From Auanema rhodensis (lineage: Eukaryota; Animalia; Nematoda), in the NCBI GenBank assembly GCA_964057225.1, contig OZ059896.1:19220001-19284000 (forward strand): a stretch of 64,000 nt of DNA. Reading direction: 5' to 3'. Below, in pieces: positions 1-38,700 of the stretch. The translations under genes and the position numbers were made by a program. Each line of letters opens with the position of its first letter. Positions within the stretch are counted from its first letter, which is position 1. The notes beneath the pieces are model-generated. The model did not search any database. It had not been told where the DNA came from and saw only the letters and a list, made by a program, of their open reading frames with translations.

Positions 1-3000
1 CAGATCGACGCAGCTTAAAAATCCGCATCGAATGCACTATACTACATTGAGAAACGCTTAATACAAAAATTAGTTATGATCGTTTGAAAAATGATGCATT
101 AGTGTATGTTGAGTTTCCATGTACACTCAACATTGCTTCCAAAAACATTTTGACAAAAATTTTTTCGAAAAATTTCAAAATAATTTAGCAAAAAGTAGAT
201 GTTTTTAGATTCCTTTTTTCAAGGCAAAGACGATGGACAATGTTATTCAACGAAAAAATTAATTCTTCAGGGTGAAAATCGAGGATATAAGTGTGAACTT
301 ATATCAGTTGATATCTCGGTGCATTTTTAAGCTAGCGCAAATCTGATAACACAGATCGACGCAGCTTAAAAATCCGCATCGAATGCACTATACTACATTG
401 AGAAACGCTTAATACAAAAATTAGTTATGATCGTTTGAAAAATGATGCATTAGTGTATGTTGAGTTTCCATGTACACTCAACATTGCTTCCAAAAACATT
501 TCGACAAAAATTTTTTCGAAAAATTTCAAGATAATTTAGCAAAAAGTAGATGTTTTTAGATTCCTTTTTTCAAGGCAAAGACGATGGACAATGTTATTCA
601 ACAAAAAAATTAATTCTTCAGGGTGAAAATCGAGGATATAAGTGTGAACTTATATCAGTTGATATCTCGGTGCATTTTTAAGCTAGCGCAAATCCGATAA
701 CACAGATCGACGCAGCTTAAAAATCCGCATCGAATGCACTATACTACATTGAGAAACGCTTAATACAAAAATTAGTTATGATCGTTTGAAAAATGATGCA
801 TTAGTGTATGTTGAGTTTCCATGTACACTCAACATTGCTTCCAAAAACATTTTGACAAAAATTTTTTCGAAAAATTTCAAAATAATTTAGCAAAAAGTAG
901 ATGTTTTTAGATTCCTTTTTTCAAGGCAAAGACGATGGACAATGTTATTCAACGAAAAAATTAATTCTTCAGGGTGAAAATCGAGGATATAAGTGTGAAC
1001 TTATATCAGTTGATATCTCGGTGCATTTTTAAGCTAGCGCAAATCTGATAACACAGATCGACGCAGCTTAAAAATCCGCATCGAATGCACTATACTACAT
1101 TGAGAAACGCTTAATACAAAAATTAGTTATGATCGTTTGAAAAATGATGCATTAGTGTATGTTGAGTTTCCATGTACACTCAACATTGCTTCCAAAAACA
1201 TTTTGACAAAAATTTTTTCGAAAAATTTCAAAATAATTTAGCAAAAAGTAGATGTTTTTAGATTCCTTTTTTCAAGGCAAAGACGATGGACAATGTTATT
1301 CAACAAAAAAATTAGTTCTTCAGGGTGAAAATCGAGTATATAAGTGTGAACTTATATCAGTTGATATCTCGGTGCATTTTTAAGCTAGCGCAAATCTGAT
1401 AACACAGATCGACGCAGCTTAAAAATCCGCATCGAATGCACTATACTACATTGAGAAACGCTTAATACAAAAATTAGTTATGATCGTTTGAAAAATGATG
1501 CATTAGTGTATGTTGAGTTTCCATGTACACTCAACATTGCTTCCAAAAACATTTTGACAAAAATTTTTTCGAAAATTTTCAGAATAATTTAGCAAAAAGT
1601 AGATGTTTTCAGATTCCTTTTTTCAAGGCAAAGACGATGGACAATGTTATTCAACGAAAAAATTAATTCTTCAGGGTGAAAATCGAGGATATAAGTGTGA
1701 ACTTATATCAGTTGATATCTCGGTGCATTTTTAAGCTGGCGCAAATCTGATAACACAGATCGACGCAGCTTAAAAATCCGCATCGAATGCACTATACTAC
1801 ATTGAGAAACGCTTAATACAAAAATTAGTTATGATCGTTTGAAAAATGATGCATTAGTGTATGTTGAGTTTCCATGTACACTCAACATTGCTTCCAAAAA
1901 CATTTCGACAAAAATTTTTTCGAAAAATTTCAAGATAATTTAGCAAAAAGTAGATGTTTTTAGATTCCTTTTTTCAAGGCAAAGACGATGGACAATGTTA
2001 TTCAACAAAAAAATTAATTCTTCAGGGTGAAAATCGAGGATATAAGTGTGAACTTATATCAGTTGATATCTCGGTGCATTTTTAAGCTAGCGCAAATCTG
2101 ATAACACAGATCGACGCAGCTTAAAAATCCGCATCGAATGCACTATACTACATTGAGAAACGCTTAATACAAAAATTAGTTATGATCGTTTGAAAAATGA
2201 TGCATTAGTGTATGTTGAGTTTCCATGTACACTCAACATTGCTTCCAAAAACATTTTGACAAAAATTTTTTCGAAAAATTTCAAAATAATTTAGCAAAAA
2301 GTAGATGTTTTTAGATTCCTTTTTTCAAGGCAAAGACGATGGACAATGTTATTCAATGAAAAAATTAATTCTTCAGGGTGAAAATCGAGGATATAAGTGT
2401 GAACTTATATCAGTTGATATATCGGTGCATTTTTAAGCTAGCGCAAATCTCATAACACAGATCGACGCAGCTTAAAAATCCGCATCGAATGCACTATACT
2501 ACATTGAGAAACGCTTAATACAAAAATTAGTTATGATCGTTTGAAAAATGATGCATTAGTGTATGTTGAGTTTCCATGTACACTCAACATTGCTTCCAAA
2601 AACATTTTGACAAAAATTTTTTCGAAAATTTTCAGAATAATTTAGCAAAAAGTAGATGTTTTCAGATTCCTTTTTTCAAGGCAAAGACGATGGACAATGT
2701 TATTCAACGAAAAAATTAATTCTTCAGGGTGAAAATCGAGGATATAAGTGTGAACTTATATCAGTTGATATCTCGGTGCATTTTTAAGCTGGCGCAAATC
2801 TGATAACACAGATCGACGCAGCTTAAAAATCCGCATCGAATGCACTATACTACATTGAGAAACGCTTAATACAAAAATTAGTTATGATCGTTTGAAAAAT
2901 GATGCATTAGTGTATGTTGAGTTTCCATGTACACTCAACATTGCTTCCAAAAACATTTCGACAAAAATTTTTTCGAAAAATTTCAAGATAATTTAGCAAA

Positions 3001-6000
3001 AAGTAGATGTTTTTAGATTCCTTTTTTCAAGGCAAAGACGATGGACAATGTTATTCAACAAAAAAATTAATTCTTCAGGGTGAAAATCGAGGATATAAGT
3101 GTGAACTTATATCAGTTGATATCTCGGTGCATTTTTAAGCTAGCGCAAATCTGATAACACAGATCGACGCAGCTTAAAAATCCGCATCGAATGCACTATA
3201 CTACATTGAGAAACGCTTAATACAAAAATTAGTTATGATCGTTTGAAAAATGATGCATTAGTGTATGTTGAGTTTCCATGTACACTCAACGTTGCTTCCA
3301 AAAACATTTCGACAAAAATTTTTTCGAAAAATTTCAAGATAATTTAGCAAAAAGTAGATGTTTTTAGATTCCTTTTTTCAAGGCAAAGACGATGGACAAT
3401 GTTATTCAACAAAAAAATTAATTCTTCAGGGTGAAAATCGAGGATATAAGTGTGAACTTATATCAGTTGATATCTCGGTGCATTTTTAAGCTAGCGCAAA
3501 TCTGATAACACAGATCGATGCAGCTTAAAAATCCGCATCGAATGCACTATACTACATTGAGAAACGCTTAATACAAAAATTAGTTATGATCGTTTGAAAA
3601 ATGATGCATTAGTGTATGTTGAGTTTCCATGTACACTCAACATTGCTTCCAAAAACATTTTGACAAAAATTTTTTCGAAAAATTTCAAAATAATTTAGCA
3701 AAAAGTAGATGTTTTCAGATTCCTTTTTTCAAGGCAAAGACGATGGACAATGTTATTCAACGAAAAAATTAATTCTTCAGGGTGAAAATCGAGGATATGA
3801 GTGTGAACTTATATCAGTTGATATCTCGGTGCATTTTTAAGCTAGCGCAAATCTGATAACACAGATCGACGCAGCTTAAAAATCCGCATCGAATGCACTA
3901 TACTACATTGAGAAACGCTTAATACAAAAATTAGTTATGATCGTTTGAAAAATGATGCATTAGTGTATGTTGAGTTTCCATGTACACTCAACATTGCTTC
4001 CAAAAACATTTTGACAAAAATTTTTTCAAAAAATTTCAAAATAATTTAGCAAAAAGTAGATGTTTTCAGATTCCTTTTTTCAAGGCAAAGACGATGGACA
4101 ATGTTATTCAACGAAAAAATTAATTCTTCAGGGTGAAAATCGAGGATATGAGTGTGAACTTATATCAGTTGATATCTCGGTGCATTTTTAAGCTAGCGCA
4201 AATCTGATAACACAGATCGACGCAGCTTAAAAATCCGCATCGAATGCACTATACTACATTGAGAAACGCTTAATACGAAAATTAGTTATGATCGTTTGAA
4301 AAATGATGCATTAGTGTATGTTGAGTTTCCATGTACACTCAACATTGCTTCCAAAAACATTTTGACAAAAATTTTTTCGAAAAGTTTCAAGATAATTTAG
4401 CGAAAAGTAGATGTTTTTAGATTCCTTTTTTCAAGGCAAAGACGATGGACAATGTTATTCAACGAAAAAATTAATTCTTCAGGGTGAAAATCGAGGATAT
4501 GAGTGTGAACTTATATCAGTTGATATCTCGGTGCATTTTTAAGCTAGCGCAAATCTGATAACACAGATCGACGCAGCTTAAAAATCCGCATCGAATGCAC
4601 TATAGTACATTGAGAAACGCTTAATACAAAAATTAGTTACGATCGTTTGAAAAATGATGCATTAGTGTATGTTGAGTTTCCATGTACACTCAACATAGCT
4701 TCCAAAAACATTTTGACAAAAATTTTTTCAAAAAATTTCAAAATAATTTAGCAAAAAGTAGATGTTTTTAGATTCCTTTTTTCAAGGCAAAGACGATGGA
4801 CAATGTTACTCAACGAAAAAATTAATTCTTCAGGGTGAAAATCGAGGATATAAGTGTGAACTTATATCAGTTGATATCTCGGTGCATTTTTAAGCTAGCG
4901 CAAATCTGATAACACAGATCGACGCAGCTTAAAAATCCGCATCGAATGCACTGTACTACATTGAGAAACGCTTAATACAAAAATTAGTTATGATCGTTTG
5001 AAAAATGATGCATTAGTGTATGTTGAGTTTCCATGTACACTCAACATTGCTTCCAAAAACATTTTGACAAAAATTTTTTCGAAAAATTTCAAAATAATTT
5101 AGCAAAAAGTAGATGTTTTTAGATTCCTTTTTTCAAGGCAAAGACGATGGACAATGTTACTCAACGAAAAAATTAATTCTTCAGGGTGAAAATCGAGGAT
5201 ATAAGTGTGAACTTATATCAGTTGATATCTCGGTGCATTTTTAAGCTAGCGCAAATCTGATAACACAGATCGACGCAGCTTAAAAATCCGCATCGAATGC
5301 ACTGTACTACATTGAGAAACGATTAATACAAGAATTAGTTATGATCGTTTGAAAAATGATGCATTAGTGTATGTTGAGTTTTCATGTACACTCAACATTG
5401 CTTCCAAAAACATTTTGACAAAAATTTTTTCGAAAAATTTCAGAATAATTTAGCAAAAAGTAGATGTTTTTAGATTCCATTTCTCAAGGCAAAGACGATG
5501 GACAATGTTACTCAACGAAAAAATTAATTCTTCAGGGTGAAAATCGAGGATATAAGTGTGAACTTATATCAGTTGATATCTCGGTGCATTTTTAAGCTAG
5601 CGCAAATCTGATAACACAGATCGACGCAGCTTAAAAATCCGCATCGAATGCACTATACTACATTGAGAAACGCTTAATACAAAAATTAGTTATGATCGTT
5701 TGAAAAATGATGCATTAGTGTATGTTGAGTTTCCATGTACACTCAACATTGCTTCCAAAAACATTTTGACGAAAATTTTTTCGAAAAATTTCAAAATAAT
5801 TTAGCAAAAAGTAGATGTTTTTAGATTCCTTTTTTCAAGGCAAAGACGATGGACAATGTTACTCAACAAAAAAATTAATTCTTCAGGGTGAAAATCGAGG
5901 ATATAAGTGTGAACTTATATCAGTTGATATCTCGGTGCATTTTTAAGCTAGCGCAAATCTAATAACACAGATCGACGCAGCTTAAAAATCCGCATCGAAT

Positions 6001-31328: not shown

Positions 31329-31331
31329 AAT
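31329..31331 (+). repeat. Left AAT crossover trinucleotide (partner at 35755-35757)
   Basis: Empty site GAAA-AAT-GATG; left junction GAAA-AAT-TATT; right junction ATAT-AAT-GATG; circle junction from the ICR ATAT-AAT-TATT. Confidence 0.9.
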
Positions 31332-31366
31332 TATTCTATTTTACTAGTCTACGACGTTAAATAAGA
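31332..31366 (-). other. 3'-terminal extension (rE) beyond the ITR
   Basis: TATTCTATTTTACTAGTCTACGACGTTAAATAAGA is present at this end only and is mirrored in the ICR, as in DIRS-1 elements. Confidence 0.9.
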
Positions 31367-31512
31367 ATTATATTTATTCGAAATGCTTTATTTCGTAATA
31401 GGTCCTCACATAAAACAAACAAAAAAAATTCAAATTATCTCTCAGGTTCCCTTTCCCACGTTTCTTTGGGCGGGAAACAGTGAGAGTAAGCGATCGTCCT
31501 TATTCATTTCAG
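31367..31512 (+). repeat. 3' inverted terminal repeat of the DIRS element (146 bp)
   Basis: Matches the reverse complement of 35612-35757; identity stops after ATTTCAG. Confidence 0.95.
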
Positions 31513-31758
31513 GTGTCCGAAAAAGGAAGAATAGAAAGGCAGCATAACAATAACAAAATAAAAGAACAATAGTAACAGAAGGAAAGGAAAGGCTGCGGAT
31601 AGCAGGCAGCATGCTAATCTATCTCTTGCGGTCGTAGTTGGTGCGTTGTGCAGGCTTGAATCTGGAAAGTTATGATAAAGACATCGAAAGTGGGCGAGCT
31701 CGAGTGGAAGTCCTCAGGTTGGTTAGCGGGAGCGCAGTAGGGGTGGAGGTGGGAGATA

Positions 31759-31831
31759 TTCGAATAAATATAATTCTTATTTAACGTCGTAGACTAGTAA
31801 AATAGAATAATTATATTTATTCGAAATGCTT
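31759..31831. other. Internal complementary region (ICR), template for the circular cDNA junction
   Basis: 31759-31812 is the reverse complement of 31329-31382 (54 bp), and 31810-31831 is the reverse complement of 35736-35757 (22 bp). The halves overlap by ATT. It lies just past the YR stop codon (31834-31836). Confidence 0.93.
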
Positions 31832-31833
31832 CT

Positions 31834-32080
31834 TCAAAAAAGAATCTTGGACTGGAACGAGGTTCTTCGCTCATAGTGGGTGAAGAAGGTTTTTTCTGAA
31901 GCCCAGTTAGCCGCCTTGAGGATGTCGCCTATAGGTAGACCTTGCGCTAGTGCCTTCGAGGTCACAGCCGAGCGTGTTGAGTGAGCTTTGAAGGTAGTGG
32001 GTATGCCCGCGCTGTGCAGGGTCTTTCTAATCCAACCAGAAATGGTGGTGGGTTCCACTGCTGCTAAAATTCTTTCTGTT
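31834..32080 (-). pseudogene. Tyrosine recombinase, C-terminal catalytic part in the +1 frame
   Basis: TISGWIRKTLHSAGI...FKAHSTRS (H-x-x-R), ILKAANW, TFFTHY (catalytic Tyr). It continues the upstream YR ORF if the frame shifts near 32060-32090. Confidence 0.88.
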
Positions 32081-33103
32081 AAGAAAGAGGCATCTTGTTC
32101 GGCGGAGTTCCATGGTTCGAGATAGGTATTCATTTATGCAGTTAATAGGGCACAGGTTATTGCGTGTGGGGAAGTTCTCGAACTTCGCTTCATGCGGGGG
32201 TCCCTTAGATCTGTTTTTATTGCGTTTATTTATGAAGAAAGTTAACCCTTCTGCGTCGATACGCATGTGATCTAGGGAGAAAACGGCCAATTCGCTCACC
32301 CTCTTTGGAGAGCATAGGGCCAATAGAGTGGCTAGCTTGTGAGTGAGAGACTCTAGGCTGAGTTGGACGTTGGGGCCCAGCCTATCAAGGAAGTCCAAGA
32401 CTTCGGAGGGGTCCCAGGTGTCTACGTACCTAGCCCCTGAAGGCTTCTCTCTGAACAAACCCCTCATGAGGCGGAGGAGCAGCACGTTCTCCTTTAGGGA
32501 GGGGGAGACCCCTAGGTGATCGGCCAATGCGGATATCGCTACCTTGTGTATGCGTACTGTGGAGAAGGCCTTAGTTTGAGCGAGAAATGATAGATAGTTA
32601 GCAACCGTTACTGGGTTGGGAGTAAAAGGTATCTTCTGCTTATTGCAGTAAGCTTTCCAGTTCTTGAGAGCACAGCCGTACTGTTTGCGTGTTCCTGGGG
32701 CCCAGGATTCGTTTAGGAGTCTCTTAGTCTCTGCTGTTACTCCCTCAAAGGAGTTTGTTAAATCTTCCACGCTGCTAATTGGAAATTCGGCGACTGCAGG
32801 AGAGGATGTGGGTTTCCTTCCCGGTCGGACAGCAGGTTCGGGTGTTGGAGCAGCAAGGGAGGCTCCTTGGATCTCTCTTGGAGTAGGGGAAACCACATTT
32901 GGCTCTTCCAGAATGGTGCTATCACTATAGCCGACCTCTGGGAGCTGGCGAGCTTTCCTAAGGTCTTGTGCAGGAGGTGGAAAGGTGGAAATACGTAAAG
33001 TAATCCGTCTGGCAGCTGCTGCCAATTGAACAAGAGTGCGTTCACTCCTAATGCGGCGCAATCTGGAAAGAAGGAGTAGAAAAGGGCGCATTTGGCGTTC
33101 CAA
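32027..33103 (-). CDS. Tyrosine recombinase, N-terminal part (core-binding domain and catalytic Arg box I); truncated by frameshift
   Basis: SWAPGTRKQY..WKAYC, VANYLSFL, HKVAIS, LMRGLFREKP..RY..TWD, KLATLLALCSPKRVSEL, LCPINCINEYLSRT. The first ~115 codons overlap the MT domain in another frame, so the true start is uncertain. Confidence 0.88.
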   Translation of the reverse strand: MERQMRPFLLLLSRLRRIRSERTLVQLAAAARRITLRISTFPPPAQDLRKARQLPEVGYSDSTILEEPNVVSPTPREIQGASLAAPTPEPAVRPGRKPTSSPAVAEFPISSVEDLTNSFEGVTAETKRLLNESWAPGTRKQYGCALKNWKAYCNKQKIPFTPNPVTVANYLSFLAQTKAFSTVRIHKVAISALADHLGVSPSLKENVLLLRLMRGLFREKPSGARYVDTWDPSEVLDFLDRLGPNVQLSLESLTHKLATLLALCSPKRVSELAVFSLDHMRIDAEGLTFFINKRNKNRSKGPPHEAKFENFPTRNNLCPINCINEYLSRTMELRRTRCLFLNRKNFSSSGTHHHFWLD

Positions 33104-35580
33104 GTGGACGCGAACAGGTCTATTTTGGGTTCACCCCATTTGGAAAATATTGATCTAGTGATCTCCGGATGGAGCGACCAGTCTTCCTTCAAAATTCTGC
33201 CGCGGGACAGGCAGTCGGCAGCCGTATTGATTTTTCCCGCTATATGCGATGCTCTGATTCTGAGCTTACGGGTATCGGCAAATTGCCATAACTCCAGTGC
33301 TAATCTAGTGCCCTTCTGGGATTGACTCCCGCCCCTACGGTTGATGTAGGCAATGGCAGAAGTATTATCTAAGAGTAAGAGAACGTCGAGATTGCGCCAG
33401 GTCTTGCCGAACTCTGTTAGACCCTTCGTTGCTGCAATCAGCTCCAGCCAGTTTATATGGTAGTTAATGCGTTCTGCCTCGGACCAAGATCCTGACAAGG
33501 TATTACCTTCCCACGAAGCGCCAAAACCCTCCAGGGAGGCATCTGAGGTAATGGAGTATCGGGGAGAAAAGGGCGTGAGCGAGGATACTTCTGATAGACG
33601 GGGAACGTCCTTGGTTCGAAGATCCTCCAGGATCTTTCTTAACGATCGATCTATTCTTAGAATCTGAGGGAAGGCATTGGGATCATTTACGTTCGTAATT
33701 CCTTTAAGCCGTAGGTGGAAGTGCAGTTCACGGTTTCTGAAGGAGAGGTTAGGTGCTACCAGAGACGCAAAGTTCAATTTTCCCATTAGCGAGGCTAATG
33801 CTCTTATACTCAGCTCTGATTGAGCTGTTAAACGAGTGAGAGACTCGAGCAAACCGTTTTTCTTGGCCTTTGGGAGAGACCAGCTCATCGATCTTGAATT
33901 CAGCTGAATACCAAGAAATTCTATTTCTTGTGTGGGTATCATAATTGATTTATCCCAGTTTATCGTAAAACCCGCGCGATCAAAAGTAATTAGAATCTCT
34001 GTTAGTTGGGACCTGAGACAATCAGGATCCTCCGAGATGAACAGCCAGTCATCTAAGTAGTTGATGAGATTGATCCCTTTACCCCGAAAATGGGATACCA
34101 GAACACGCATTAGCTTATGGAATATGTAGGGGGCTGAGCTCAGCCCAAAAGGGAGTGCTCTAAATAGGAAAGTGCGCCCCTCTGCTGTGAAAGCTAGGAA
34201 GGGTTGATCCTTCGGATCGATACTAATCGCGTGGTAGGCTGAATGGAAATCGATTTTGATCATGAAATTATCCTGTCGTAGGAGCGACGGGATGTCCCGA
34301 AGGGATTCTAGCTTGAACTTGGGTACTCGGAGAAAAGTGTTCAGGCGCTTTAAATTGAGGATGAAACGGGCCGTGCCGTCCGCCTTGGGAACGTGGAAGG
34401 TCGGGGATATGAAAACCTTCTCCCTCGGGGCGGCCTCTCGAATGGCGCCAGTGTACAGCAGTTCCTGGATATCCGACCTGGGTTGCTCCGGCAAGGTAGA
34501 GCAGATGGGTGGCAGCGATAAAGGTGGAGGTGTGCGGGCAAAGGGGAGACTATAGCCCTGAACCGCGTTAAGGATCTCCTTGTCCCTGGAGATGGACGCC
34601 CAAAAGGTTGTGGTGGAGGATACCCGGCATGCGAAAGGAAAAGTGACTAACCTCTTTCTCTGGTTAGTAGCGAACGTTGAGAAGGTAGCTTGTCTCTTGG
34701 GGGCTGAGCGTGGCCGTTGGGCATCATTCCTGCGAGGAGTTGTTCTGGAGCTTCTGGACAGTTCGGAGTACGACGATAGTTCTGCTCTGAGCTTCTTGCC
34801 AAACAGTTCGGGTGCCGAATCCTCTGGAGCGTTGTCTACCGGGATCACGGTTCCATAGATGGGGGACTTCTTGAAGCTAGGCATGGCTCGGTAGGGTTGA
34901 GAGATCTTCATCTTGGTTAGAGCACACTCTCGCAAGTTGGTGCAGTGGGTCTTGATGTTAGCGCTGAGGAAGCGCTCCACTATGGCAAAGTATGCCTCCT
35001 GTTTTGTTGACAGACGAGAGTCCCTATCTATCCTGCCCAGCTTGCGAATTATCTTGATGTTAGAAAGAACGATTAGATCATTCTCGTATGCCGTGCGTAT
35101 CTCAGCTTCGGACAGACGGATAGTGGGCTTGATGTTATTGTCCACGTGAGTAGTGTAGCGGTCGTCCAAGACCGGTAGTCGAGCGAACGGTGAGTCGATA
35201 TTTGGGAGTTCCGAGATGAGCTCAGCTCTCTCGGTCGAGGACATGAGCAGTCCCGAGGCGAGTCTCTCGAAATCAGCAGTCTCGGAGGAAGATAGGCGAA
35301 CGAGTGGCCTAGATCTGGGTCCATGTGCCTCCGGTGGCATGGGGACCGTTTCGTCTTCGTCGTCCTCTGAATAGAGGTCCTCTTTCTCGGGCTGGTCCGA
35401 GTTCGGAGGTGGTGGGGAAGGAGCTTCTACCCTTCTCCTCTCGACGTGTTGACGGTCGGTGGAGATAGACGTTGGAGATGTTGAGCGTGACGATCTCGAA
35501 GAAGAAGAGCTGAAGGCTCGTACTCTTCTCGGAGAAGTTTCAGTCGGGGCTTGTCCCTGACGAGTGTGGCTTGGAGCCAT
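32758..35580 (-). CDS. Gag-like / reverse transcriptase / RNase H / Dam-like N6-adenine methyltransferase polyprotein (940 aa)
   Basis: S/R/P-rich Gag-like N-terminus. RT motifs: FHVPKADGTARFILNLKRLN, KIDFHSAY, LPFGLSSAP, YLDD (34048-34059), IEFLG. RNase H motifs: TSDAS, HINWLEL, LDNTSA, NTAADCLSR. MT motifs: IDLFAS, YVFPPF, IAPFWKSQMWFP. C-terminus LAAWKI. Confidence 0.93.
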   Translation of the reverse strand: MAPSHTRQGQAPTETSPRRVRAFSSSSSRSSRSTSPTSISTDRQHVERRRVEAPSPPPPNSDQPEKEDLYSEDDEDETVPMPPEAHGPRSRPLVRLSSSETADFERLASGLLMSSTERAELISELPNIDSPFARLPVLDDRYTTHVDNNIKPTIRLSEAEIRTAYENDLIVLSNIKIIRKLGRIDRDSRLSTKQEAYFAIVERFLSANIKTHCTNLRECALTKMKISQPYRAMPSFKKSPIYGTVIPVDNAPEDSAPELFGKKLRAELSSYSELSRSSRTTPRRNDAQRPRSAPKRQATFSTFATNQRKRLVTFPFACRVSSTTTFWASISRDKEILNAVQGYSLPFARTPPPLSLPPICSTLPEQPRSDIQELLYTGAIREAAPREKVFISPTFHVPKADGTARFILNLKRLNTFLRVPKFKLESLRDIPSLLRQDNFMIKIDFHSAYHAISIDPKDQPFLAFTAEGRTFLFRALPFGLSSAPYIFHKLMRVLVSHFRGKGINLINYLDDWLFISEDPDCLRSQLTEILITFDRAGFTINWDKSIMIPTQEIEFLGIQLNSRSMSWSLPKAKKNGLLESLTRLTAQSELSIRALASLMGKLNFASLVAPNLSFRNRELHFHLRLKGITNVNDPNAFPQILRIDRSLRKILEDLRTKDVPRLSEVSSLTPFSPRYSITSDASLEGFGASWEGNTLSGSWSEAERINYHINWLELIAATKGLTEFGKTWRNLDVLLLLDNTSAIAYINRRGGSQSQKGTRLALELWQFADTRKLRIRASHIAGKINTAADCLSRGRILKEDWSLHPEITRSIFSKWGEPKIDLFASTWNAKCALFYSFFPDCAALGVNALLFNWQQLPDGLLYVFPPFHLLHKTLGKLASSQRSAIVIAPFWKSQMWFPLLQERSKEPPLLLQHPNLLSDREGNPHPLLQSPNFQLAAWKI

Positions 35581-35611
35581 GGACGATCGTATGTGAGGCT
35601 CAACGAAAAAA

Positions 35612-35757
35612 CTGAAATGAATAAGGACGATCGCTTACTCTCACTGTTTCCCGCCCAAAGAAACGTGGGAAAGGGAACCTGAGAGATAATTTGAATTTTT
35701 TTTGTTTGTTTTATGTGAGGACCTATTACGAAATAAAGCATTTCGAATAAATATAAT
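35612..35757 (-). repeat. 5' inverted terminal repeat of the DIRS element (146 bp)
   Basis: Reverse complement of 31367-31512 (ATTATATTTATTCGAAATGC...TTATTCATTTCAG); no mismatch seen on reading. Confidence 0.95.
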
Positions 35758-38700
35758 GATGCATTAGTGTATGTTGAGTTTCCATGTACACTCAACATTG
35801 CTTCCAAAAACATTTCGACAAAAATTTTTTCGAAAAATTTCAAGATAATTTAGCAAAAAGTAGATGTTTTTAGATTCCTTTTTTTAAGGCAAAGACGATG
35901 GACAATGTTATTCAACAAAAAAATTAATTCTTCAGGGTGAAAATCGAGGATATAAGTGTGAACTTATATCAGTTGATATCTCGGTGCATTTTTAAGCTAG
36001 CGCAAATCTGATAACACAGATCGACGCAGCTTAAAAATCCGCATCGAATGCACTATACTACATTGAGAAACGCGTAATACAAAAATTAGTTATGATCGTT
36101 TGAAAAATGATGCATTAGTGTATGTTGAGTTTCCATGTACACTCAACATTGCTTCCAAAAACATTTTGACAAAAATTTTTTCGAAAAATTTCAAAATAAT
36201 TTAGCAAAAAGTAGATGTTTTTAGATTCCTTTTTTCAAGGCAAAGATGATGGACAATGTTATTCAACGAAAAAATTAATTCTTCAGGGTGAAAATCGAGG
36301 ATATAAGTGTGAACTTATATCAGTTGATATATCGGTGCATTTTTAAGCTAGCGCAAATCTCATAACACAGATCGACGCAGCTTAAAAATCCGCATCGAAT
36401 GCACTATACTACATTGAGAAACGCTTAATACAAAAATTAGTTATGATCGTTTGAAAAATGATGCATTAGTGTATGTTGAGTTTCCATGTACACTCAACAT
36501 TGCTTCCAAAAACATTTCGACAAAAATTTTTTCGAAAAATTTCAAGATAATTTAGCAAAAAGTAGATGTTTTTAGATTCCTTTTTTCAAGGCAAAGACGA
36601 TGGACAATGTTATTCAACGAAAAAAATAATTCTTTAGGGTGAAAATCGAGGATATAAGTGTGAACTTATATCAGTTGATATCTCGGTGCATTTTTAAGCT
36701 AGCGCAAATCTGATAACACAGATCGACGCAGCTTAAAAATCCGCATCGAATGCACTATACTACATTGAGAAACGCTTAATACAAAAATTAGTTATGATCG
36801 TTTGAAAAATGATGCATTAGTGTATGTTGAGTTTCCATGTACACTCAACATTGCTTCCAAAAACATTTCGACAAAAATTTTTTCGAAAAATTTCAAGATA
36901 ATTTAGCAAAAAGTAGATGTTTTTAGATTCCTTTTTTCAAGGCAAAGACGATGGACAATGTTATTCAACAAAAAAATTAATTCTTCAGGGTGAAAATCGA
37001 GGATATAAGTGTGAACTTATATCAGTTGATATATCGGTGCATTTTTAAGCTAGCGCAAATCTCATAACACAGATCGACGCAGCTTAAAAATCCGCATCGA
37101 ATGCACTATACTACATTGAGAAACGCTTAATACAAAAATTAGTTATGATCGTTTGAAAAATGATGCATTAGTGTATGTTGAGTTTCCATGTACACTCAAC
37201 ATTGCTTCCAAAAACATTTCGACAAAAATTTTTTCGAAAAATTTCAAGATAATTTAGCAAAAAGTAGATGTTTTTAGATTCCTTTTTTCAAGGCAAAGAC
37301 GATGGACAATGTTATTCAACAAAAAAATTAATTCTTCAGGGTGAAAATCGAGGATATAAGTGTGAACTTATATCAGTTGATATCTCGGTGCATTTTTAAG
37401 CTAGCGCAAATCTGATAACACAGATCGACGCAGCTTAAAAATCCGCATCGAATGCACTATACTACATTGAGAAACGCTTAATACAAAAATTAGTTATGAT
37501 CGTTTGAAAAATGATGCATTAGTGTATGTTGAGTTTCCATGTACACTCAACATTGCTTCCAAAAACATTTTGACAAAAATTTTTTCGAAAAATTTCAAAA
37601 TAATTTAGCAAAAAGTAGATGTTTTTAGATTCCTTTTTTCAAGGCAAAGATGATGGACAATGTTATTCAACGAAAAAATTAATTCTTCAGGGTGAAAATC
37701 GAGGATATAAGTGTGAACTTATATCAGTTGATATATCGGTGCATTTTTAAGCTAGCGCAAATCTCATAACACAGATCGACGCAGCTTAAAAATCCGCATC
37801 GAATGCACTATACTACATTGAGAAACGCTTAATACAAAAATTAGTTATGATCGTTTGAAAAATGATGCATTAGTGTATGTTGAGTTTCCATGTACACTCA
37901 ACATTGCTTCCAAAAACATTTCGACAAAAATTTTTTCGAAAAATTTCAAGATAATTTAGCAAAAAGTAGATGTTTTTAGATTCCTTTTTTCAAGGCAAAG
38001 ACGATGGACAATGTTATTCAACAAAAAAATTAATTCTTCAGGGTGAAAATCGAGGATATAAGTGTGAACTTATATCAGTTGATATCTCGGTGCATTTTTA
38101 AGCTAGCGCAAATCTGATAACACAGATCGACGCAGCTTAAAAATCCGCATCGAATGCACTATACTACATTGAGAAACGCTTAATACAAAAATTAGTTATG
38201 ATCGTTTGAAAAATGATGCATTAGTGTATGTTGAGTTTCCATGTACACTCAACATTGCTTCCAAAAACATTTCGACAAAAATTTTTTCGAAAAATTTCAA
38301 GATAATTTAGCAAAAAGTAGATGTTTTTAGATTCCTTTTTTCAAGGCAAAGACGATGGACAATGTTATTCAACGAAAAAAATAATTCTTTAGGGTGAAAA
38401 TCGAGGATATAAGTGTGAACTTATATCAGTTGATATCTCGGTGCATTTTTAAGCTAGCGCAAATCTGATAACACAGATCGACGCAGCTTAAAAATCCGCA
38501 TCGAATGCACTATACTACATTGAGAAACGCTTAATACAAAAATTAGTTATGATCGTTTGAAAAATGATGCATTAGTGTATGTTGAGTTTCCATGTACACT
38601 CAACATTGCTTCCAAAAACATTTTGACAAAAATTTTTTCGAAAAATTTCAAAATAATTTAGCAAAAAGTAGATGTTTTTAGATTCCTTTTTTCAAGGCAA

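Follow-up and report, generated by a model that had tools for sequence, protein, structure and literature searches.

How an intact-looking retroelement came to lie in perfect register inside a satellite array is the question raised by this locus. Does it belong to a family that seeks out the satellite, and does that family read one particular site in the repeat unit? The window, by which we mean the whole 64,000-nt stretch of Auanema rhodense DNA that was analysed, consists of a single array of a 351-bp satellite (1-31331 and 35755-63998, 98% matches in TRF), and GC content rises from 0.31 in the array to 0.45-0.53 across the insert only.

Structure of the element and its junctions

The array, the element and its repeats are arranged as follows.

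1-31331, + strand: 351-bp satellite left of the insertion, 89.3 units, last monomer position 92 (TRF and sequence)
31329-31331, + strand: AAT at the left junction, 3-bp crossover core, the target's or the element's own
31332-35757, - strand (sense strand): DIRS1-like retrotransposon, 4,426 bp (from sequence, repeats and ORFs)
31332-31366, - strand: terminal extension past the inverted terminal repeat (ITR), 3' end of the element in sense, complementary to part of the ICR (inverted repeat I2)
31367-31512, - strand: ITR arm, 3' end in sense (inverted repeat I1, 146 nt)
31759-31831, - strand: internal complementary region, ICR (inverted repeats I2 and I3)
35612-35757, - strand: ITR arm, 5' end in sense (inverted repeat I1, 146 nt)
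35755-35757, + strand: AAT at the right junction, where the crossover core stands a second time
35758-63998, + strand: 351-bp satellite right of the insertion, starting again at monomer position 93

The left part of the array ends at 31331, which is 89 x 351 + 92, and the right flank continues from position 93; the insertion at monomer position 90-92 has added 4,426 bp, removed none and kept the satellite phase. Both junctions carry AAT and there is no target-site duplication. The two ITR arms of this copy, each of 146 nt, are 100% complementary. Within the ICR, 31759-31812 complements the left end of the element (31329-31382) and 31810-31831 complements the right end (35736-35757), the whole being the reverse complement of both ends joined. 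These two complements share an ATT overlap, and therefore the junction of a circular form would carry one AAT. No split or long direct repeats were found in the element, and the short ones (26 nt or less) are part of the ICR and ITR system.

Coding capacity

Two overlapping reading frames occupy the sense strand.

32758-35580, - strand: long ORF, 940 aa from ATG (958-codon open frame), with gag-like N-terminus, reverse transcriptase (RT), RNase H-like and Dam-like regions
33901-34389, - strand: RT domain, residues 398-560 (PF00078, E 1.1e-21)
32875-33189, - strand: Dam-like methyltransferase region, residues 798-902, weak match (PF05869, E 0.0097)
32027-33103, - strand: recombinase ORF, N-terminal part, overlap with the end of the long ORF about 370 nt
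31834-32133, - strand: tyrosine recombinase, C-terminal part with HxxR and catalytic Y region (PF00589, E 0.0014)
32066-32068, - strand: private 3-for-2-base replacement causing the recombinase frameshift, absent in 10 other full-length copies

The PF05869 match, at 16 bits, falls under the cut-off of 28.1, and the same domain is present in several of the closest relatives; the closest database proteins reach at most 39% identity. RNase H gave no Pfam match at E 0.01 or better in the 940-aa ORF, and inspection of the translation by eye picked out a D..E..D-type stretch 3' of the RT. In the same protein, Pfam found no integrase domain, chromodomain or other recognisable tethering domain. The tyrosine-recombinase frame of the window copy is split into ORFs of 358 and 99 aa because of its private replacement. 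The sister copy L002 has an intact 431-codon frame, with PF00589 at E 4.7e-8 and above the cut-off, and both frames are open in 9 of the 11 full-length copies. By its ITRs, ICR, junction trinucleotide, RT and tyrosine recombinase we assign the element to the DIRS1-like group.

A sequence-only reading of the locus had described a complete element with identical ITRs that cleanly interrupts a homogeneous satellite at monomer position 90-92. The arrangement given above bears this out for the array, the arms and the position, and completeness holds for the ITRs, the ICR and both ends, but not for the recombinase frame, broken at 32066-32068.

Copies of the family and independence of the insertions

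The element belongs to a family, here family 1, with 12 copies genome-wide, 11 full-length and 1 interrupted, that differ by at most 0.75%; copies were compared as found, without use of any consensus, repaired or ancestral sequence. Family 1 is a very young DIRS1-like tyrosine-recombinase family of A. rhodense. All 12 copies are flanked by the 351-bp satellite and all adjoin AAT (a single lineage has AAG at one of its sides), and the orientation of every copy tracks the strand of its AAT. The ITR arms are identical or nearly so in all 11 full-length copies, and the variants that occur, in L008 and in the length of the A-run, are mirrored in both arms, which is consistent with retrotransposition, since this predicts mirroring.

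Copies that occupy the same site could descend from one insertion, without any site preference, if segmental duplication, unequal crossing-over or homology-directed copying, inside an array or from one array to another, had multiplied it. Such duplication does occur: L002/L003, L004/L007 and L009-L011 have identical flank runs of 300 to 1,500 nt, well above the null, for which the median identical run is 53-62 nt, and the distance between L004 and L007 is exactly 4 monomers; these copies did arise by duplication after insertion. However, the flanks of L001, L004, L005 and L006 mismatch 3-7 nt from the junction while the elements themselves differ by only 0-11 bases; over 4,427 bp L004 and L005 show no difference, and yet their flanks differ by 3%, with the first mismatch at the 8th base outwards. 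Nor does the tree of elements track the site, L001 (site A) being nearer to L002 (site B) than to L004 (site A). Moreover, site A is occupied by two different families, and sites B and C are oppositely oriented to site A. Duplication as the whole explanation is thus very improbable. We count about 8 independent family-1 insertions at 4 monomer sites and in both orientations, at least 4 of them at site A (GAAAAAT^GATGCA, position 90-92).

Target motif and hot spot

At the four family-1 sites, what follows the core on the right is unrelated (GATGCA, TTTTGT, GTTGAG and CCGCAT), and only an A-run followed by AAT is common to them. Seven of the 8 family-1 events, together with all reconstructed events of a second family described below, lie at this motif or, once, at an A-run with AAC; the insertions explained by the rule are also those from which it was derived. 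Each 351-bp monomer contains 27 AAT/ATT, but just 8 AAAAAT/ATTTTT.

The 351-bp satellite amounts to 121,191 monomers or 42.5 Mb, at least 23.5% of an assembly that matches the germline size of 180.9 Mb given in a preprint (10.64898/2026.08.27.747507). Against its 23.5% share of length, the placement of 8 of 8 events in the satellite has a P of 9e-6. The genome holds 1,662,597 AAAAAT sites, about 969,500 of which (about 58%) are inside the satellite, and against this motif share P is about 0.013; exclusivity is therefore weaker than it appears. Position 90-92 received 4 of the 8 family-1 events (P 0.09 if the 8 AAAAAT sites were used evenly) and, with the second family pooled, 6 of 10 (P 0.004 on the same assumption). 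This position is over-used, and something beyond the hexamer matters.

We also considered the lack of family 1 in a second satellite, AT-1, as evidence of specificity. The AT-1 FISH probe of the preprint has 138,553 genome matches with a 176-bp period, and the satellite covers 24 Mb. The AT-1 unit contains about 1 AAAAAT and the 351-bp unit 8, so that in roughly one case out of three none of 8 events would be expected to fall in AT-1, and this argument was dropped.

Sister families and a distant relative

Family 2 is a second DIRS family with 65% DNA identity to family 1. At site A it has made at least 2 insertions, which match those of family 1 in nucleotide and orientation, and it adds a fifth site. 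It is also found at A-run and AAT sites in unrelated satellites of 199, 200 and 173 bp, and therefore recognition involves a short motif with a 3-bp crossover and not one attachment site per monomer. Families 1 and 2 have the outermost 15 nt of their ITRs in common, so that they probably have the same target preference. All 19 inspected loci of the two families lie in satellites, of at least 4 different kinds, and none of these loci is in non-repetitive DNA. A family 3 is represented by about 8 RT matches in the genome. A distant relative in an ENA assembly (L039), with a 34% identical protein, has the same ITR and ICR structure and is located outside satellite, and consequently the wider clade is not characterised by life in satellites.

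The same comparisons bear on whether the recombinase, or a partner, actively reads an extended monomer sequence around TTTGAAAAAT^GATGCA. On this view the array would offer attachment sites throughout, and the remaining sites would be look-alikes of lower affinity. The repeated use of site A by at least 4 independent family-1 and at least 2 family-2 insertions, at one nucleotide and in one orientation, is what such targeting predicts, as are the location of 12 of 12 family-1 copies in the satellite and a target preference probably held in common, given the shared ITR ends. However, the four family-1 sites are alike only in A-run and AAT, with unrelated sequence to their right, family 2 uses the same rule in three unrelated satellites, and the hot spot is just moderately significant among AAAAAT sites. 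By eye, we could see no likeness of site A to the circle junction beyond the core. On balance we consider this explanation unlikely.

As judged from the sites used, the target is a short motif, an A-run then AAT, with a hot spot, rather than one attachment site. This leaves the targeting interpretation of the sequence-only reading partly supported. In its favour are 12 of 12 copies in a satellite covering about 23.5% of the assembly and the recurrent insertions of both families at site A; the 58% motif share, together with tolerance of insertions in DNA that the soma probably discards, can account for most of the apparent attraction to the satellite. One attachment site every 351 bp, as it had supposed, does not agree with at least 3 further monomer sites, two of them in opposite orientation, or with family 2 in other satellites.

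Restriction to satellites and programmed DNA elimination

According to the preprint (10.64898/2026.08.27.747507), about 61% of the A. rhodense genome is deleted from somatic cells, including repeat blocks at autosome ends, H3K9me3 is found on elimination bodies and H3K27me3 on lagging DNA; the preprint does not mention DIRS elements. From its chromosomal positions in the autosome-end blocks, the 351-bp satellite itself is probably eliminated from the soma. A centromeric reading of the array was ruled out because the satellite lies in blocks reported as lost from somatic chromosomes.

Chromatin might direct the elements, with the integration complex led to germline-restricted repeats bearing H3K9me3 or H3K27me3 and AAT setting only the exact nucleotide. 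Two families in at least 4 satellites, with none of the inspected loci in non-repetitive DNA, would fit this idea, as would the marks reported in the preprint on elimination bodies and lagging DNA and the confinement of Dictyostelium DIRS-1 to heterochromatic centromeres (PMC7192593). On the other hand, the 940-aa protein has no chromodomain or tethering domain that Pfam could recognise, and family 1 is found in one eliminated satellite only and never in AT-1, although motif density alone could account for the latter. Survival of insertions in dispensable DNA predicts the same pattern equally well. We judge guidance by chromatin to be improbable, more so than the reading of an extended monomer sequence.

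The explanation that we favour, with somewhat better than even confidence, is insertion at a short motif with a hot spot, combined with passive causes for the restriction to satellites. The single AAT of the element's joined ends, as spelled by the ICR, would recombine conservatively with an AAT in the target, leaving AAT on both sides with neither duplication nor loss, and the asymmetry of AAT would set the orientation. Sites would be chosen by an A-run then AAT (in most cases AAAAAT), and monomer position 90-92 would be a hot spot. Two passive causes may then cover most of the restriction: with 8 motifs per monomer the array holds over half of the genome's motifs, and it lies in autosome-terminal blocks discarded by the soma, where a 4.4-kb insertion would be cost-free, in contrast to the gene-dense 60-70 Mb that are retained. 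Some copies would later have been duplicated along with their satellite units. The anatomy, the junctions, the copy census, the independence of the site-A insertions and the motif counts are observations, whereas we infer the circular or joined-end intermediate, that the recombinase is the catalyst, and a part played by selection. An active preference for satellite DNA or chromatin keeps some weight because all of the inspected loci are in satellites.

Comparison with known systems

The non-LTR elements TRAS1 and SART1 (telomeric repeats) and R1 and R2 (rDNA) insert at one defined site by a sequence-specific endonuclease and target-primed reverse transcription. As in those systems all copies here are at fixed nucleotides of a tandem repeat, but a tyrosine recombinase, a 3-bp core, several sites and more than one satellite are involved. 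CRM-type Ty3/gypsy chromoviruses integrate through a chromodomain-bearing integrase and duplicate their target; they too are enriched in satellite arrays, whereas the A. rhodense element has no integrase or chromodomain by Pfam.

The ends of DIRS1-like elements are mostly ATT, and recombination occurs at a 3-bp junction without duplication (PMC3266345; PMC7192593). The A. rhodense element resembles those surveyed (PMC3266345) in its ITRs, an ICR complementary to both ends, the 3-bp junction and lack of duplication, a sense-strand terminal ATT that is the commonest trinucleotide in the survey, the long overlap of pol and recombinase ORFs, and the combination of RT, tyrosine recombinase and a putative Dam-like region. 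It differs in its rhabditid host, in having gag and pol in one frame and in the presence of all copies in one satellite. With the nematode PAT1-like elements of Panagrellus, Caenorhabditis briggsae and Pristionchus it shares the DIRS order, RT, YR and a putative MT, and nematode hosts (PMC4157794), but split direct repeats (A1-B1 ... A2-B2) characterise PAT, where this element has ITRs and an ICR.

The architecture is also that of Dictyostelium discoideum DIRS-1, whose copies are likewise confined to a heterochromatic, repeat-rich 'safe' compartment (PMC7192593). Unlike DIRS-1, which accumulates in itself and forms centromeres, the A. rhodense copies are single interruptions of a satellite probably discarded by the soma. 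Relatives of A. rhodense have holocentric chromosomes.

Significance

The target specificity of DIRS recombinases has had no experimental test to date (PMC7192593), and about 8 independent, near-identical insertions in a uniform background provide a clean natural read-out of DIRS target choice: crossover takes place at a 3-bp AAT, an A-run is preferred, the core sets the orientation, and two families have one hot spot in common. DIRS1-like elements were detected in none of 12 nematodes surveyed (Piednoel et al. 2011, PMC3266345) and were thought possibly absent from Rhabditida (Szitenberg et al. 2014, PMC4157794); apparently active ones are now recorded in a rhabditid, with their copies probably placed in the fraction of the genome that somatic cells lose.

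Perhaps the A. rhodense DIRS families are specialists of germline-restricted DNA that actively aim at elimination-bound satellites, through the context of position 90-92, through chromatin, or both. We offer this tentatively, as a possibility that we doubt more than we believe. If true, programmed DNA elimination would have created a transposon niche, and the supposed absence of DIRS1-like elements from rhabditids would be accounted for, older assemblies being mostly somatic. Active targeting would tie transposon ecology to programmed DNA elimination, and passive restriction would make these families a tidy case of repeats as a safe haven.

Structure and coding state of the window copy

The window carries a homogeneous 351-bp satellite (1-31331 and 35755-63998; 98% matches, GC 0.31) whose single interruption is one insert of higher GC. 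Since 31331 = 89 x 351 + 92, the left array breaks off at monomer position 92; the right flank restarts at 93, and both junctions bear AAT. Therefore 4,426 bp were gained, with none lost and none duplicated. The monomer phase across the junctions confirms the clean insertion described in the sequence-only reading. The insert is a copy of a DIRS1-like retrotransposon family (family 1), and all its long ORFs are on the minus strand.

Features of the window copy
31332-35757: insert, 4,426 bp
31367-31512 and 35612-35757: arms of the inverted terminal repeat (ITR), 146 nt, 100% complementary
31759-31831: internal complementary region (ICR), complement of the left end (31329-31382) and right end (35736-35757)

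Inside the ICR, the complements of the two ends share an ATT overlap, and the ICR therefore represents the joined ends spelled with a single AAT. The reverse transcriptase is found in a 940-aa ORF (PF00078, E 1.1e-21), which also has a weak Dam-like match, and the recombinase is split over two frames, in ORFs of 358 and 99 aa. Alignment of the 11 full-length family-1 copies traced this split to a private 3-for-2-base replacement at 32066-32068, absent from the other 10. Nine of these 11 copies keep both frames uninterrupted, at 958 and 431 codons, and the intact recombinase frame scores above the PF00589 cut-off. The window copy is structurally complete and young, but unable to make its own recombinase; the earlier description of a complete, young element thus stands for structure and youth and fails for coding.

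Family-1 copies and independent insertions

A whole-genome DNA search of the assembly (180,911,798 bases) identified 12 family-1 copies, of which 11 are full-length and one is split by a pair of large insertions; the 351-bp satellite flanks all 12.

Family-1 insertion sites in the 351-bp monomer (^, insertion point; C1 to C6, contigs)
Site A, 90-92, GAAAAAT^GATGCA: window copy on C4 and four copies on C1
Site B, 159-161, other strand: two copies on C1 and three on C6
Site C, 132-134, other strand, GCAAT^GTTGAG: one copy on C5
Site D, 20-22, TAAAAAT^CCGCAT: split copy on C3

The single attachment site per monomer that had been proposed is replaced by four, with B and C on the other strand. The same element end adjoins AAT in every copy, one lineage having AAG on one side, and therefore orientation tracks the strand of the trinucleotide. 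Over 4.4 kb, no more than 33 substitutions separate the copies. Two ITR variants are each present in both arms of their carrier copies, as would be expected if the ends were regenerated in every retrotransposition cycle.

Identical flanks of 300 to 1,500 nt were found between loci L002 and L003, between L004 and L007, and among L009-L011. Because these runs far exceed the null for random units (median 53-62 nt, 95th percentile 166-191 nt), these copies are duplications later than insertion. The distance between L004 and L007 (G000:C1:19393784-19404039) is exactly 4 satellite units, or 1,404 bp; this is a tandem duplication comprising the element and 4 units, and a 2-bp loss breaks the long ORF in the second copy of the pair. 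At L001, L004, L005 and L006 the first flank mismatch falls 3-7 nt from a junction and the flanks diverge by 1.7-3.3%; the elements themselves differ by 0-11 bases, and element distances within the family do not track insertion site. By our estimate there were about eight independent events: A was hit four times, B twice, and C and D once each, so that recurrence at monomer 90-92, proposed earlier as a check, is seen in four of them. A build-up of copies through duplication alone can largely be excluded.

The split copy (G000:C3:4559842-4594597) is interrupted by two inserts, each roughly 17 kb long, represented by L013:2851-4350, L014:1-1500 and 2386-3885, and L012:1-1500. They belong to one element family in opposite orientations; their terminal inverted repeats measure at least 640 nt, and the 6-bp target duplications are GCCGTA and ATGGAG. 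In size, termini and target duplication they resemble Maverick/Polinton elements.

Abundance and probable fate of the satellite

The Auanema rhodense germline assembly is 180.9 Mb, of which somatic cells lose about 61%, and the autosome ends consist almost wholly of two repeats, AT-1 and AT-2 (10.64898/2026.08.27.747507). The published AT-1 FISH probe has 138,553 matches in the assembly with a 176-bp period, which upholds the A. rhodense identification. With up to 2 mismatches allowed, a 33-mer from the 351-bp unit has 121,191 matches in the whole assembly, giving at least 42.5 Mb of satellite, or 23.5% of the assembly. The satellite positions seen are all toward autosome ends, and from this chromosomal position we infer that the 351-bp satellite is AT-2 and is eliminated.

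The AT-1 satellite opens contig 1 (L038, G000:C1:1-1661) and makes up 13.5% of the assembly by probe count (about 24.4 Mb), with one AAAAAT per unit. Each 351-bp unit contains a 14+14-nt dyad (GTTGAGTTTCCA / TGTACACTCAAC type) at positions 106-133 (window 35771-35798), and site C is at its 3' edge.

Sister families

A protein search of the genome revealed two more DIRS families, with amino-acid identities of 55% and 47%. Family 2 (65% DNA and 55% protein identity to family 1) has in common with it the ITR and ICR plan and the outer 15 nt of the ITR. All seven fetched family-2-like loci (L031-L037, the last a variant; C4:13.65M; C3:4.41M, 4.95M; C6:4.73M, 15.9M; C1:3.14M, 13.2M) are in satellites, three in 351-bp units and the others in unrelated 199-, 200- and 173-bp units. 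Within the 351-bp unit, family 2 occupies site A at four or more C3 loci, with unrelated flanks in the two checked, and is inserted once at position 68-70, ACAAAAAT^TAGTTA, which is a fifth site. Reconstructed empty sites in the other satellites read as an A-run followed by AAT, or AAC in one case.

At L036:1648-9901 (G000:C3:4413147-4421400), two family-2 copies 4,787 bp apart have 2.2 satellite units between them. The first is missing its normal right end, and the arrangement suggests local copying inside the array. An isolated match to the right end of the L037-like variant (G000:C4:10771046-10771080) is followed by non-satellite-looking sequence (ATTAGCTGGATTGGGAA) and may be a DIRS end lying outside the satellites identified so far. 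Family 3 is DIRS-like, with 46-47% protein identity from RT to MT and 700-codon open frames in six of its eight matches (C1:12975695, C1:12995705, C3:5288997, C4:7887999, C4:12012770, C4:12054996, C8:25846241 and C6:4252169).

Motif preference and possible targeting

The 351-bp monomer contains 27 AAT/ATT trinucleotides and eight AAAAAT/ATTTTT hexamers. The hexamers were used in seven of the eight family-1 events and in every family-2 event in this unit, so the preference for A-runs is real; the motif was derived from the very insertions it serves to explain. Site A accounts for four of the eight family-1 events, with P 0.003 when all 27 trinucleotides count as eligible and P 0.09 when only the eight hexamers do; pooling families 1 and 2 gives six of 10 events (P 0.004 on eight sites), which makes site A a moderate hot spot.

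Enrichment in the satellite, a check proposed in the sequence-only reading, has P ~9e-6 by length, for all eight events against a 23.5% share. It is weaker by motif: about 969,500 (58%) of the 1,662,597 AAAAAT hexamers genome-wide are inside the 351-bp satellite, and against this share P is ~0.013, a value that does not yet allow for selection against insertion in gene-dense retained DNA. Given the A-run use, the site A share and these habitat statistics, we rank first a short-motif rule combined with motif abundance and tolerance in dispensable DNA, extended recognition at site A second, and chromatin-directed targeting third.

Comparison with known DIRS elements

Most DIRS1-like elements begin and end with NTT, most commonly ATT, and integration is thought to occur, with no duplication, by recombination of the 3-bp junction with the same trinucleotide in the genome (PMC3266345; PMC7192593). 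The family-1 junctions follow this same rule, and Dictyostelium DIRS-1 is likewise confined to a heterochromatic safe compartment (PMC7192593). The closest database proteins, all unnamed, are at most 39% identical, and one such relative sits outside satellites. DIRS1-like elements were reported missing from nematodes (PMC3266345) or, possibly, Rhabditida (PMC4157794), and the elimination preprint makes no mention of DIRS (10.64898/2026.08.27.747507). What is new relative to these published accounts is a nematode host, within Rhabditida, for DIRS1-like elements, and their residence in germline-restricted satellites.
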